Shown here piece after piece: positions 1,336-4,673 of a DNA stretch of 64,000 nucleotides. Every line of letters starts with the position of its first letter. Position 1 is the first letter of the stretch. The notes below the pieces were generated by a model that was given only the letters and a program-made list of their open reading frames with translations, had not been told where the DNA came from and did no database searches. This DNA comes from Pavona decussata (taxonomy: Eukaryota), in contig CDRNST010000035.1 in assembly GCA_977016875.1 (NCBI GenBank), forward strand, positions 4,216,001-4,280,000. Direction: 5' to 3'. A program made the translations under genes and the position numbers.

Positions 1336-1809
1336 TTACTCCTCATTGTTAACCCACTTCTCAAGGACCTCTGCTACAGCCATTCGCTTAAGATCCTCAT
1401 CCTTCAACAGCTCAATCAGCCTTCCAACAGTTGCATCACAGCTCGATGACCATGTTGACAACACAACATTAGTGGGGTTTTCCAACTGCTCAACAAACTT
1501 GATCTCATACCTGTCTAATCCTACCTTTTCTGCCAGCATTCGGAAATCATCAAATCGCAGAATGCGTCTGATATTCAACATCAGGCAGACACTGGAGTAC
1601 ACTTCCAGAGGTATGTATGCCACCTTAGTTGAAAGGCGATGTAGCTGCATGCGGGGACGTGCAGTTGGGGTCGCATATTGCTCCTCTACTCCAGTAAAGG
1701 GTGCTTGCAAGGTACCATGAACATCAGTGTTAATGTGCAGGACAGCCAGCATGAAGCTCAAGATGAAGGCAGCATACCAGTCTGATGGCAGCTCTTGGCA
1801 GCTTTCAAA
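1336..1809 (-). CDS. G1 terminal exon 3: second TM helix (WYAAFILSFMLAVLHI) + linker + C-terminal MyD88-like death domain
   Basis: The ORF 1336..1761 extends in frame to the acceptor ...tttcaccctttag|TTT GAA AGC at 1809 (phase 0, matching the exon 2 donor). DD pattern: YSSVCLMLNIRR..FDDFRMLAEKVGL...ENPTNVVLSTW...ATVGRLIELL...R..V.EVLEKWV*. Confidence 0.85.
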   Translation of the reverse strand, partial: FESCQELPSDWYAAFILSFMLAVLHINTDVHGTLQAPFTGVEEQYATPTARPRMQLHRLSTKVAYIPLEVYSSVCLMLNIRRILRFDDFRMLAEKVGLDRYEIKFVEQLENPTNVVLSTWSSSCDATVGRLIELLKDEDLKRMAVAEVLEKWVNNEE

Positions 1810-3275
1810 CTAAAGGGTGAAACAGCATCTTATTTTATTACTTGCTGTTACAATGTTTCGTACCCAATTACACATTAAGTACAGTGCATGCATTGGCTGA
1901 TAGCAACATTCATTATAATTCATGATTTAGTACCTTCCATTAGACCTCATAATACTAAAAGCTTAATTTGACTCACTCCAGCTAACTGTCTGACATATTA
2001 TTTTGTAGTTTTTCAATCACTAAGGCTTTCTCTTTGTTTTCTTCTTTTACTTTATTAGGAAATTATTTAAATTTTACAAATCTTTCTTAAAGGATACCAG
2101 CCTCATAGCTAAAAGGGATACCCTGGTTAAATAAAGTTACTTAGTTGAGTTTAAGTTATAATTACTTGTCTACTTACTTACTTCCTTACAATGGTAACCT
2201 GCCAGGAGCATTAAGTCCTGTTGACACCCTCTGCAGTATTTAAGCGCTTTTTCTGTACATATTGAAAGGCTGATGATGGATAGTTCTAATAATTAACCAA
2301 TTGAAACAATTTTATAGGAGTCCTAAACTAATAGCTACACCAAGTTCAGTCCAAGTTTGTATTCACTCCGTTAATTCTATTACCTTATAAATTATTTGTA
2401 GGCCCATTAGATGTAATTACAGTGGAAGCCCACTTTTAACAGACATGCCTTGCCAGTGCACTTCCCATTCAGCCAAACCTAAAAAAAGTTTCATTTATGC
2501 AAGGAGTCTCGTTATTGGAACTTAACGCTCTGTGAGTTCTCTCCTGTCAGAGGTTTCTTCATGTTGTTTTTTTCTACTCTGGCGAAGTTTATAAATAAAT
2601 AAATAAAATTTAGGTGCTCAAGGGAGTAGTATTCTAAAATTTTTTCCAGTTTCATAAATTTCTGTTCTCGGAATTTTGGGTTGAATGGAAAGCACATCTA
2701 GTTATTACAAACAGTCTTGTTGACCTGCTCATTAAGGATCACTATATGGATGCATGCATGATTGGTTCTAGTGATGTTACGACTGTACAAATGGGCTTTG
2801 ACTGTATTCGGATTGTCTGTAAAAAGTTAACTACAGAGTAGATACAACTTTTACAACTTTATAAAATATTTATATCTTAATATTAATTTAACAGAAATAT
2901 GCAGTCCACATATACAGCTGTAGCATAGCTAATACAGGCAGACTGTGTAACTTAACAATTATTACATTTTACACGTAAATAGAATAAATAATACGCTCTC
3001 GTCGTTCCCTTGAAAAATCTATACCCATTTTCAGACCAAAACAGCTTAAAACCATACCCTTTGGGGCGGCAAATACCTATTATAGCTAATATTGGGGAGC
3101 AACCCCACTCTCCCCAGGTATTAAGAACAGTTTTAAAAGATTGCATTTGTAAGTGGATGTACATACTAGTACAAGTTGGGAGATTTTGATGCAACATAAT
3201 TTCCATGCACAAACCTTCTATGGACATGCAGCTGAACATTTTAATCAAAGATAATTTAACATCCAAGCCATATAC

Positions 3276-3421
3276 CTTTCCATTGAAGTTTAATCCTTTG
3301 TCCACATAAAGCAGGAAATACAGGCAAACAAACAACACCAAACAAGTGAACAGGATTGGTACTGGCTTCACTTTTTGGCAGAATTGTGTGATCCATTCTT
3401 TGAACCTTGGCTGAGATGGTC
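3276..3421 (-). CDS. G1 exon 2: first TM helix (PILFTCLVLFVCLYFLLYV)
   Basis: Acceptor ctgataattgcag|GA (phase 1) and donor GGA AAG|gtatat (phase 0), 146 nt. The phases join exon 1 and exon 3 in one open frame. Contains a 19-aa hydrophobic stretch. Confidence 0.75.
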
Positions 3422-4510
3422 CTGCAATTATCAGAAAGACAGTTGACATAAACAATGAGGAAACTATTTCAATTGTTGATTACAATCTTGTATATAACAA
3501 AATATGTGAACCTATAATCTATTAAATTGCCAGGCATGCATGTATGCAATGTCAGCACTTAAACATTTCCTTAATAGATTCGTTACAGAAATGTACGTGG
3601 CACATTAATAAGAACTAGTAAATTATCAGAAAAAATTAATAAATCAACACAAATTGAGTAAAAAGAAAGTGAAAGGAGATGCGGTGAATAACTTAAATTT
3701 AAATTTTTAGGCTAAAGACTAAAGAGACTCCAGCAACAGGAGAGAGCAGAAATACATTGATCCTGAGTAAGTGTAAGCGCTGAGCCAGTCCATTTAGCTC
3801 TCCGAAGAACTCACCTTACTTTAGGCACTTTCCACTTGTCAGAGACAACATAGACAGTCAGAAAAGTGCTATACATTTGCGTGGTACTGTCGGCTAAGAC
3901 AAGCTGGCTGAAGACCGGGATGCATTATTGGCTAGGCTAGCTGTTATTGGCTACCATTGAAATTTTTTGACCAATGAGAGAGGACAGGTGTCAGGACAGG
4001 TACAAAGTTTGTGTGCAGCGAATCAATGAAGCATGAACTTACAAACTTGAAGCAAATTTCGTACACAACTCTGGTCTTTCAATATTTCATACTCCTACGA
4101 TTGCCGTAGAATTCTATGACATGCTAGAGCCGTTTATCTGGTTTCCTGTAAGACAAGTTTTAAGTTTGCTTGACACTTTTGCATCGTAAAAAAGCCACCT
4201 CATAAGCTTGGCGAACAAGTTTAGCAAAAAATTTAAAAAAAATTTAAAACAACAAGGTTAAGGAACAGTTATTGTAAACTGTCGGCATTAACCACAGCAA
4301 ATACTTTCAATCTTCAAGTGTATTTATTCCAAAAAGCCATCACAACCAAATTTGATCACTTAAATTTAAGGCCCGGATATACCGCATGCATCGATAAAAT
4401 TTTGTGCGCTTCTTGGATAATGTATAAGAGTCTGGAAAAATATATATGTAGATCACAAAGCAAGTAAATGCATTCTTAAGGAATCTGGGTAGAAATTGAA
4501 ATTCACTTAC

Positions 4511-4673
4511 TACGCTCGTCTTTTACGGGTTTTTCTGTACTGGCACCTAGACCTTCTCTCACGATCATTCTCTGCTGCTTGTCGGCTTTCTTGGAATCGA
4601 CAGCTGAATCTTGTGGAATAAAGTTTGCACCTTCACCATTGCATGATATTTCAACTCGTGAAGATAAATCCAT
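4511..4673 (-). CDS. G1 exon 1 (MDLSSRVEISCNGEGANF...EKPVKDER), hydrophilic N-terminus
   Basis: ATG at 4673 and an open frame of 163 nt to a consensus donor CGT A|gtaagt (phase 1), compatible with exon 2. CCAAT boxes lie just upstream. Confidence 0.7.

Follow-up and report, generated by a model that had tools for sequence, protein, structure and literature searches.

A three-exon coral gene with two conserved hydrophobic segments ahead of a death domain

The minus strand of a 64,000-nucleotide stretch of Pavona decussata DNA (contig CDRNST010000035.1, positions 4,216,001 to 4,280,000; hereafter the window) carries a real gene of three exons that ORF-based calls have missed. Its third exon encodes a genuine death domain, and two conserved hydrophobic segments lie ahead of this domain. 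We find it somewhat probable that the full-length product is a membrane-anchored cytosolic death-domain adaptor, encoded by a lineage-restricted coral gene. Beyond the gene structure, the death-domain fold and the conserved hydrophobic segments, what we say of its topology, anchoring role, partners and membrane is inferred.

The gene comprises the following parts:

Exon 1: 4511..4673, minus strand; ATG at 4673-4671, 54 polar codons plus one base (163 nt, phase 1), then a GTAAGT donor
Exon 2: 3276..3421, minus strand; 146 nt after a CAG acceptor, phase 1 in and phase 0 out, coding for a basic juxtamembrane stretch and, after it, the first hydrophobic segment (TM1), then GTATAT
Exon 3: 1336..1809, minus strand; starts directly after TAG/AG and holds the end of the loop, the second hydrophobic segment (TM2), a 40-residue linker, the death domain and TAA at 1338-1336
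Promoter-like region 5' of exon 1: 4790..4837, minus strand; CCAAT box at 4794-4790 and inverted CCAAT box at 4837-4833

As read from the sequence, exons 4673-4511, 3421-3276 and 1809-1336 are bounded by canonical GT/AG sites and join in phases 1 and 0 to give 260 codons (54 + 1 split + 48 + 157), confirming the boundaries, phases and length of about 260 residues given in a preliminary description of the locus. Because the TAG before 1809 is an in-frame stop as well, the frame of exon 3 cannot extend further 5'. At the other end of the gene, exon 1 was considered as an internal exon of a larger gene and this was rejected: an in-frame stop lies ~10 codons 5' of the ATG and conserved CCAAT boxes lie 120-165 nt upstream, and exon 1 is therefore treated as the first exon. 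In the three-paralogue alignment, every copy shares the inverted CCAAT box and two of them the direct one, with similarity collapsing further upstream; the promoter-like region can also be aligned to L025, a locus in another assembly. An AG stands immediately 5' of the exon 1 ATG, which makes an untranslated leader exon conceivable. The window contains 320 N letters, which were left as they stand.

The gene had been described as hidden from the ORF track, and public collections bear this out: exon 3 is represented in them only by a 138-residue ORF, and exon 2 only by read-through ORFs. Among 1.84 billion representative proteins, no spliced model of the gene was found by an exhaustive profile search with exon 2, while a word-indexed search with exon 3 and the cluster listings of public protein collections returned single-exon ORF calls only. 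Nothing of the membrane part is captured by ORF-based or existing gene calls.

A search for related loci spoke for the proposed structure. Five other loci, namely two tandem paralogues (B and C) at distances of 14 and 39 kb and the loci L011, L025 and L026 from other assemblies, keep the ATG, the four splice sites, the phases and the open frames, with exon indels confined to multiples of three and no stops. The alignment of the three tandem paralogues has zero gap columns in the exons and hundreds in the introns, with ATG, stop codon and splice sites the same or equivalent in each copy. That these features are kept at five loci while the introns are full of indels is more than chance would give. 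Exon 1 measures 163, 163, 163, 163, 133 and 166 nt in the window copy, B, C, L011, L025 and L026, respectively, and the last two, more distant loci retain its phase-1 donor despite length changes of -30 and +3 nt. At least 73 substitutions have accumulated in exon 1 with no stop arising (P about 0.02 if neutral), and the neutral chance of a stop-free exon 1, exon 2 and start of exon 3 is about 0.02 x 0.13 x 0.21. The dN/dS ratio of exon 1 ranges from 0.3 to 1.6, indicating little constraint on the residues themselves; it is near 1 for exons 1 and 2 in several comparisons and 0.35-0.58 for exon 3. At the protein level, exon 2 is 83-90% identical in B, C, L011 and L026, 63% in L025 and 35-40% in the C57/L009 type, with W9, Q12, K18, P19 and the hydrophobic run invariant. 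The methionine that lies within TM2 has no counterpart in paralogue C or L025, so the coding start must lie 5' of exon 3.

The C-terminal domain was identified by sequence and by structure prediction, the predicted product being analyzed exon by exon rather than as the joined 260-residue protein.

Death domain: 1351..1608, minus strand; six helices, residues 68-153 of exon 3

The Pfam family Death (PF00531) matches residues 87-152 of exon 3 with 37.1 bits against a curated cut-off of 22.6 (E 3.5e-9), and phmmer against PDB sequences returned the death domains of MyD88 (4.8e-6) and UNC5H2 (9.8e-6). The AlphaFold model is a six-helix bundle (helices 68-80, 87-95, 100-107, 112-120, 128-136 and 143-153) with a pLDDT of mostly 89-95, falling to ~70 around residues 81-90. 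Its best Foldseek matches are the death domains of p75NTR, MyD88, Pelle and UNC5H2, with TM-scores by target of 0.66-0.79; the E-values are merely 0.02-0.1 because the domain is small, and the top matches are nonetheless all death domains. The earlier assignment of a death domain is thereby upheld. Pfam matched Death alone, with no TIR domain, and the protein stops 4 residues past the death domain.

Ahead of the death domain, two apolar stretches are conserved:

TM1: 3300..3362, minus strand; 21 apolar residues, residues 20-40 of exon 2
TM2: 1732..1779, minus strand; ~16 apolar residues, residues 11-26 of exon 3

TM1 has a 19-residue Kyte-Doolittle mean of 2.55 in the window copy and 2.0-2.85 in relatives, and its summed Hessa-type insertion energy is negative. 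For TM2, the corresponding mean is 1.7-2.0 in eight relatives and 1.51 in the window copy, which falls below the usual threshold of 1.6; AlphaFold places a helix at residues 11-32 of exon 3 with a pLDDT of 60-71. Neighboring death-domain exons in the same cluster are without a TM2 segment. Two transmembrane helices separated by a loop of ~19 residues had been proposed, and of this the two conserved segments and a loop of 18 residues stand, with the qualification that TM2 is marginal in the window copy. In some copies the loop has an N-x-S site. The short, borderline TM2 of this copy is a weak point for a hairpin. The N-terminus had been described as polar, with no signal peptide or ectodomain, and we reached the same result: the best 19-residue Kyte-Doolittle mean of exon 1 is only 0.07, so there is no signal peptide, and against Pfam exon 2 gave no match and exon 1 a sub-threshold one only (13.7 bits against a cut-off of 22.7).

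The net charge is +4 before TM1 and -2 after it, and by the positive-inside rule both ends of the protein would be cytosolic only if TM2 also spans the membrane. It is highly improbable that the product is a single-pass protein in which TM1 alone spans and TM2 forms a peripheral or re-entrant helix, even though the ~16 residues of TM2, its borderline hydropathy in the window copy and an AlphaFold confidence of just 60-71 would suit such an arrangement. The observed charge bias would then put the death domain outside the cytosol, where we know of no death-domain partner. Furthermore, TM2 is conserved at nine loci, all the others exceeding the window copy in hydrophobicity, and the number of hydrophobic segments in relatives (2, 2 and 4) is always even.

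Two of the relatives suggest where such a hairpin might come from. P0039 (257 residues, L014), an independent example of the layout, derives from a 1102-nt public transcript contig with untranslated flanks and is laid out as a polar N-terminus, two transmembrane segments and a death domain of the same subfamily (52% identity over 126 residues). Its transmembrane pair matches positions 12-51 of the Pfam family SNF (SLC6 transporters) with 29.7 bits against a cut-off of 27. A fourth paralogue, on contig C57, appears to carry four transmembrane segments, phase-compatible exons adding two. The start of a longer exon in this paralogue corresponds to an intronic stretch of the window copy:

Intronic relic of coding sequence: 3447..3465, minus strand; start of a longer exon in the C57 paralogue

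Colinear blastn anchors align window 3465-3200 to L031:4675-4945, and in the window copy the relic is out of frame with exon 2.

From these relatives we arrive at a tentative and rather doubtful reading, in which the hairpin would be all that is left of the N-terminal half of a transporter of the SLC6 neurotransmitter type, captured ahead of a death-domain exon. The coral forms would then make up a graded series: P0039 would represent SLC6 TM1-TM2 plus a death domain; the C57 paralogue would be a four-segment form, its first exon ending exactly at the position of the coral SLC6 post-TM1 intron; and the window gene would be a two-segment form in which the former TM2 coding sequence has turned intronic and out of frame. 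Helices would always have been trimmed in pairs, keeping the death domain cytosolic. SLC6-like helices were found only in P0039 and, through P0039, in the C57 paralogue. No similarity was detected between P0039 and exons 1 or 2 of the window gene (including hhalign of exon 2), and SNF did not match exon 2, P0065 or the L009 exon. When aligned by hhalign to true SLC6 exons of the same genome, exon 2 gave matches of 9-12 columns only (E 0.045-0.23), and searches with the exon 2 family in Pfam, PDB sequences (including a profile search) and the ESM Atlas returned nothing significant. By-eye alignments of exon 2 to SLC6 TM3 and to SLC6 TM4 were mutually inconsistent, and this claim of homology was dropped for the window gene; the inconsistency is a warning against inferring homology from apolar helices. 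If the transporter origin were true, the gene would represent a novel class of death-fold adaptors in which reused transporter helices form the anchor, and its two promoters, described below, would possibly yield anchored and free isoforms.

Transcript evidence came from the contigs of four runs, of which X1 is labelled probable RNA and X8 and X9 are RNA runs examined for contig depth. RNA support for the junctions had been named as a check, and it was obtained in part: spliced X1 contigs join exon 2 to exon 3 and use the acceptor of exon 2 at 3421, although with paralogue letters, whereas the exon 1/2 junction (4511 to 3421) was found in no RNA contig, X1 depth on exon 1 was nil, and a junction from 3820 to 3421 was found instead. 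The exon 1/2 junction is thus a prediction from comparative evidence. One X1 contig spans 3276-3389, and its next 23 letters are identical to the start of exon 3 in paralogues B and C. At the informative sites compared in exons 2 and 3, the X1 contigs agree with both B and C or else with none of the copies; no letter specific to the window copy (such as G at 3348, 3402 and 3415) was seen. In the two declared RNA runs, contigs read through each of the four splice sites without splicing and are only 90-93% alike. In X8 and X9, the bins of exons 1, 2 and 3 exceed the non-repeat intron bins and depth ends upstream of ~4842; these are contig depths from an organism 90-93% alike, and they were rejected as evidence.

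The letters of the X1 contigs would fit a window copy that is silent or decaying while only its paralogues work, as would the TM2 hydrophobicity, which is lowest in this copy, and a TAA, seen in this copy alone, that immediately precedes the donor of the non-coding exon described below. We nevertheless give this only a small chance, as its frames, splice sites, start and stop codons are all intact, and contigs, here from four runs only, lose rare variants.

The junction from 3820 to 3421, present in two X1 contigs with GT..AG ends, led to two further features:

Internal promoter-like block: 3927..3979, minus strand; CCAAT boxes at 3950-3946 and 3931-3927
Alternative non-coding exon: 3820..3862 (5' end unmapped), minus strand; donor A|GTAAGG at 3820/3819, seen in X1 contigs

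Window positions 3979-3942 are 95% identical to L025, above the 71-84% of the coding exons, and positions 3862-3795 are 91% identical. The donor at 3820/3819 is kept in three of three paralogues. A coding role for the alternative exon was rejected, there being no open frame in any paralogue; in the window copy, a TAA lies directly 5' of its donor in the coding frame. The gene seems to own a second, internal promoter, whose transcripts begin with a non-coding exon and without the start codon of exon 1.

This raises the question of whether the main product is a soluble protein consisting of the death domain only, made from internal-promoter transcripts, which would be the majority, with exon 2 as a leader and translated from an exon 3 methionine, exons 1 and 2 being relics of an older membrane protein. 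The sole upstream junction in RNA contigs is indeed 3820 to 3421, exon 1 has nil X1 depth, and conservation is higher in the internal promoter block and the non-coding exon than in the coding exons. Exons 1 and 2 often have dN/dS near 1, and part of what was once a longer exon now lies in an intron, out of frame. We regard this product as unlikely all the same. Paralogue C and L025 have no methionine at the TM2 position, L025 and L026 have none at residue 54 of exon 3, the place of the next one, and the internal-promoter transcripts bear an out-of-frame upstream ATG that opens a frame of ~60 codons. Moreover, exons 1 and 2 are open across six loci with indels in threes only, and the hydrophobicity of TM1 is kept even at 35-40% identity.

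In the anchored-adaptor reading that we prefer, the 260-residue product would begin with a disordered polar N-terminus, followed by two spanning helices whose short connecting loop lies outside or in a lumen. From there, a flexible linker of 40 residues would lead to a death domain like those of MyD88 and UNC5. Both termini would be cytosolic, and the hairpin would serve as an anchor, not a receptor, keeping the death domain close to a membrane of some kind on its cytosolic side. There, the anchored domain could join helical assemblies of the many soluble or multi-domain death-domain proteins encoded nearby, as a platform, seed or decoy. The two functions proposed earlier, nucleation of the soluble paralogues on a membrane and an oligomerisation-gated membrane effector, are both speculative.

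By analogy with the short transmembrane effectors of bacterial defence, the hairpin might do damage instead, if polymerisation of death domains clustered the hairpins and these perturbed or perforated the membrane. The architecture, a polymerising domain beside a minimal two-helix element without a ligand-binding part, is what this idea draws on, together with the location of the gene family in a fast-evolving immune-type cluster. We hold it to be quite improbable: there is no pore indication, the helices being plainly apolar without a conserved charged or amphipathic face, and the membrane part varies among relatives (an SLC6-like pair, four helices, two helices), which fits an anchor better than a precise pore.

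To our knowledge, every well-studied death-domain membrane protein is a single-pass receptor that reads an outside signal, and anchoring by a bare two-helix hairpin is undescribed for true death domains. A death domain fixed in this way would be an anchored adaptor, as MAVS is for CARD signalling, and would add to the picture of corals assembling immune and cell-death proteins by exon shuffling ahead of death-domain exons. The practical value is modest while transcript structure and protein location remain predictions.

Among known systems, death receptors cross the membrane once, in type I orientation, and have a signal peptide and an ectodomain. NRADD/p75NTR, TNFR1, Fas, EDAR and UNC5 are like the window gene product in being membrane proteins with a cytosolic death domain, the cytosolic side being a prediction in our case. 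The modelled death domain superposes best on that of p75NTR (TM-score by target 0.75-0.79), and in sequence it is close to UNC5H2. In contrast to these receptors, the window gene encodes neither a signal peptide nor a ligand-binding ectodomain, has two hydrophobic segments in place of a single type I one and would have its N-terminus in the cytosol by charge bias, which sets it outside this class. Of the solved structures, MyD88 comes closest in sequence (E 4.8e-6) and shares the order of motifs through helices 1-5, but it is soluble and its death domain is followed by a TIR domain, which the window gene lacks, placing the gene outside the MyD88 family. We know of no death-domain fold in the tail of P2X7. 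The cytosolic tail of this receptor was likened to the death domain of TNFR1 in older literature (PMC9329894). P2X7 has two transmembrane helices, as the window gene would, but it is an ion channel with a large ectodomain between them and is unrelated in sequence. Finally, MAVS is a tail-anchored CARD adaptor, in which a minimal anchor holds a death-fold domain at the cytosolic membrane face as a polymerisation platform. It is a functional analogue only, with a CARD instead of a death domain, a single C-terminal tail anchor and no sequence relationship, and the window gene product may act at its membrane in a comparable way.

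The gene comprises three exons on the minus strand of the window, joined in phases 1 and 0 to 260 codons in total. Re-reading the window sequence reproduced exactly the exon coordinates, phases and length of the preliminary description, and also bore out its statement that the gene is hidden from the ORF track, the ORF list containing fragments of it only.

4673-4511, minus strand: exon 1, with an ATG at 4673, 54 polar codons and a GTAAGT donor after 4511
3421-3276, minus strand: exon 2, with a CAG acceptor before 3421 and a GTATAT donor after 3276
1809-1336, minus strand: exon 3, starting directly after a TAG and closed by a TAA stop at 1338-1336

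The TAG before 1809 is an in-frame stop and at the same time supplies the AG acceptor of exon 3. Within intron 2, positions 2873-3266 form a very high-copy repeat. Contig depth there rises to as much as 40,000 in the DNA run, loose contig ends are numerous at 3014-3080, and the ORF that reads through from exon 2 extends into the repeat. Upstream of the gene, ORFs at 10511-11783 (minus strand) resemble reverse-transcriptase fragments of a retroelement.

The death domain proposed for exon 3 was confirmed by both sequence and structure comparisons. Pfam Death matched residues 87-152 of the exon 3 product at 37.1 bits (cut-off 22.6), and the best sequence matches among solved structures were the MyD88 death domain (E 4.8e-6) and UNC5H2 (9.8e-6). 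An AlphaFold model of this product, built from a 37-sequence alignment, displays six helices over residues 68-153 (pLDDT mostly 89-95, about 70 around residues 81-90) and a separate long helix of lower confidence at residues 11-32. The top Foldseek ranks were taken by the death domains of p75NTR, MyD88, Pelle and UNC5H2, with TM-scores by target of 0.66-0.79. On the minus strand, 18204-18668, 37216-37737 and 54821-55072 are death-domain exons of this subfamily as well, with 45-59% identity, placing the window in a death-domain gene cluster; these exons carry polar linkers and no TM2-like segment.

The stony-coral genome contains two further copies of the gene, the tandem paralogues B and C, 14 kb and 39 kb off on the same strand. 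In an alignment of the three copies, the exons are free of gap columns, while the introns contain 250-1000 of them; counted over substitutions, identity is 0.86-0.95 in exons and only a little lower, 0.86-0.91, in introns. All three retain the ATG, the two donors, the two acceptors and the stop. The same three exons occur at loci of other public assemblies: L011, L026 and, at a greater distance, L025. The L025 exon 1 uses a different donor and is 30 nt shorter, and that of L026 has a shifted donor that lengthens it by 3 nt; both still end in phase 1. Exon 2, 39 nt shorter in L025, retains its phase-1 start in both. At least 73 substitutions in exon 1, 36 in exon 2 and 38 in the start of exon 3 have introduced no stop, the chance of which under neutrality is about 0.02, 0.13 and 0.21, respectively. 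The dN/dS values (0.35-0.58 for exon 3; 0.35-1.2 for exon 2, with 3.3 in one near-identical pair; 0.3-1.6 for exon 1) indicate that selection on the N-terminal half acts mainly on the frame and apolar character rather than on individual residues. Moreover, the methionine inside TM2, the hydrophobic segment of exon 3, from which ORF callers start is absent in paralogue C and L025, so translation must start upstream of exon 3. The window gene is very probably real. At L026:5825-5929, 535 nt upstream of the real exon 1, part of that exon is duplicated in inverted orientation; this duplicate already contains a stop, an example of an unconstrained copy.

We compared four sequencing runs with the window, all as Logan contigs: X1 (labelled probable RNA), X8 and X9 (declared RNA) and X16. 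One X1 contig spans 3276-3389; its next 23 letters equal the opening 23 bases of exon 3 as present in paralogues B and C, the predicted exon 2/exon 3 junction. In two X1 contigs, 3421 is joined to 3820 with GT..AG ends, which shows the exon 2 acceptor in use together with an upstream exon other than exon 1; on exon 1, X1 has no depth. Since the X1 letters at 3348, 3402, 3413 and 3415 are those of paralogues B and C, this splice evidence concerns the paralogues and not the expression of the window copy. The contigs of X8 and X9 are short, 90-93% alike and unspliced across all four splice sites, and therefore decide nothing; those of X16 cover every bin, so we took this run as genomic DNA. The splice from exon 1 to exon 2 is predicted, and expression of the window copy is putative.

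3820/3819, minus strand: donor of the alternative exon, A|GTAAGG, retained in all three paralogues

This alternative exon has no open reading frame in any of the three copies, and the ATG that it contains does not share the frame of TM1, the hydrophobic segment of exon 2. Two CCAAT boxes precede the donor by about 100 nt, and identity to L025 is 95% over 3979-3942 and 91% over 3862-3795, compared with only 71-84% for the coding exons. This pattern suggests that 3795-3979, within intron 1, holds a conserved internal promoter followed by a non-coding first exon; its transcripts might be non-productive, serve regulation or yield a free death-domain isoform. Another intronic block, 4285-4358, is 89% identical to L025, where it directly follows exon 1.

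As TM1 and TM2 each lie entirely within one exon, both can be analysed without exon joining. Of the two transmembrane (TM) helices initially described, TM1, a run of 21 apolar residues, was upheld (19-residue Kyte-Doolittle mean 2.55), while TM2, of about 16 apolar residues, is marginal in the window copy (1.51) and reaches 1.7-2.0 in eight relatives. Net charge is +4 over the 19 residues before TM1 and -2 over the 18-residue loop, which by the positive-inside rule places the N-terminus in the cytosol. With this predicted topology, the death domain would be cytosolic only if TM2 also spans the membrane.

Relatives of the gene carry other membrane parts. P0039 (257 residues) is encoded at L014:96-869, in a 1102-nt Logan transcript contig that looks full-length and has untranslated flanks. 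Its death domain, of the same subfamily, is preceded by two TM segments matching Pfam SNF (SLC6 transporters) above cut-off, as a TM1-TM2 fragment of such a transporter. The contig could be a chimeric assembly. A fourth family member in the genome is located on the plus strand of contig C57.

L030:4520-4702, plus strand: first exon, with a helix resembling SLC6 TM1 and a phase-1 GTAAGT donor
L031:4673-4872, plus strand: second exon, about 10 kb downstream, with a phase-1 acceptor
L031:7853-8302, plus strand: third exon, with TM2 and a death domain, 86% identical to exon 3 of the window gene

True SLC6 genes of the same genome have an exon boundary at the place equivalent to the end of the first exon, after SNF profile position 37-39. 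The second exon supplies a helix that resembles P0039 TM2 (E 2e-4) and, after it, the counterpart of the window TM1. The exon phases are compatible, and the joined product would have four TM segments ahead of its death domain. Out of frame in intron 1 of the window gene, 3465-3447 matches the start of the longer C57 exon, a relic from which we infer that the two-helix form probably derived from the four-helix form. Pfam, PDB and profile-profile tests for SLC6 descent of the window gene's own helices were all negative. The hydrophobic-segment counts of the family forms (2, 4 and 2) are even every time, which fits a cytosolic death domain and favours TM2 as a true span. TM2 itself is marginal, and the function of the product is one that we infer.

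The window gene has an unusual architecture; new N-terminal modules before death-domain exons are commonplace in its family. Full-text literature searches turned up no account of a two-helix hairpin preceding a death domain. A survey from 2021, devoted to death-like and TRADD-N architectures of marine invertebrates, mentions receptor-like forms with a single TM and not the hairpin form (PMC8195603). Among two-TM proteins, these searches showed a death-domain-like tail ascribed to P2X7 alone (PMC9329894).
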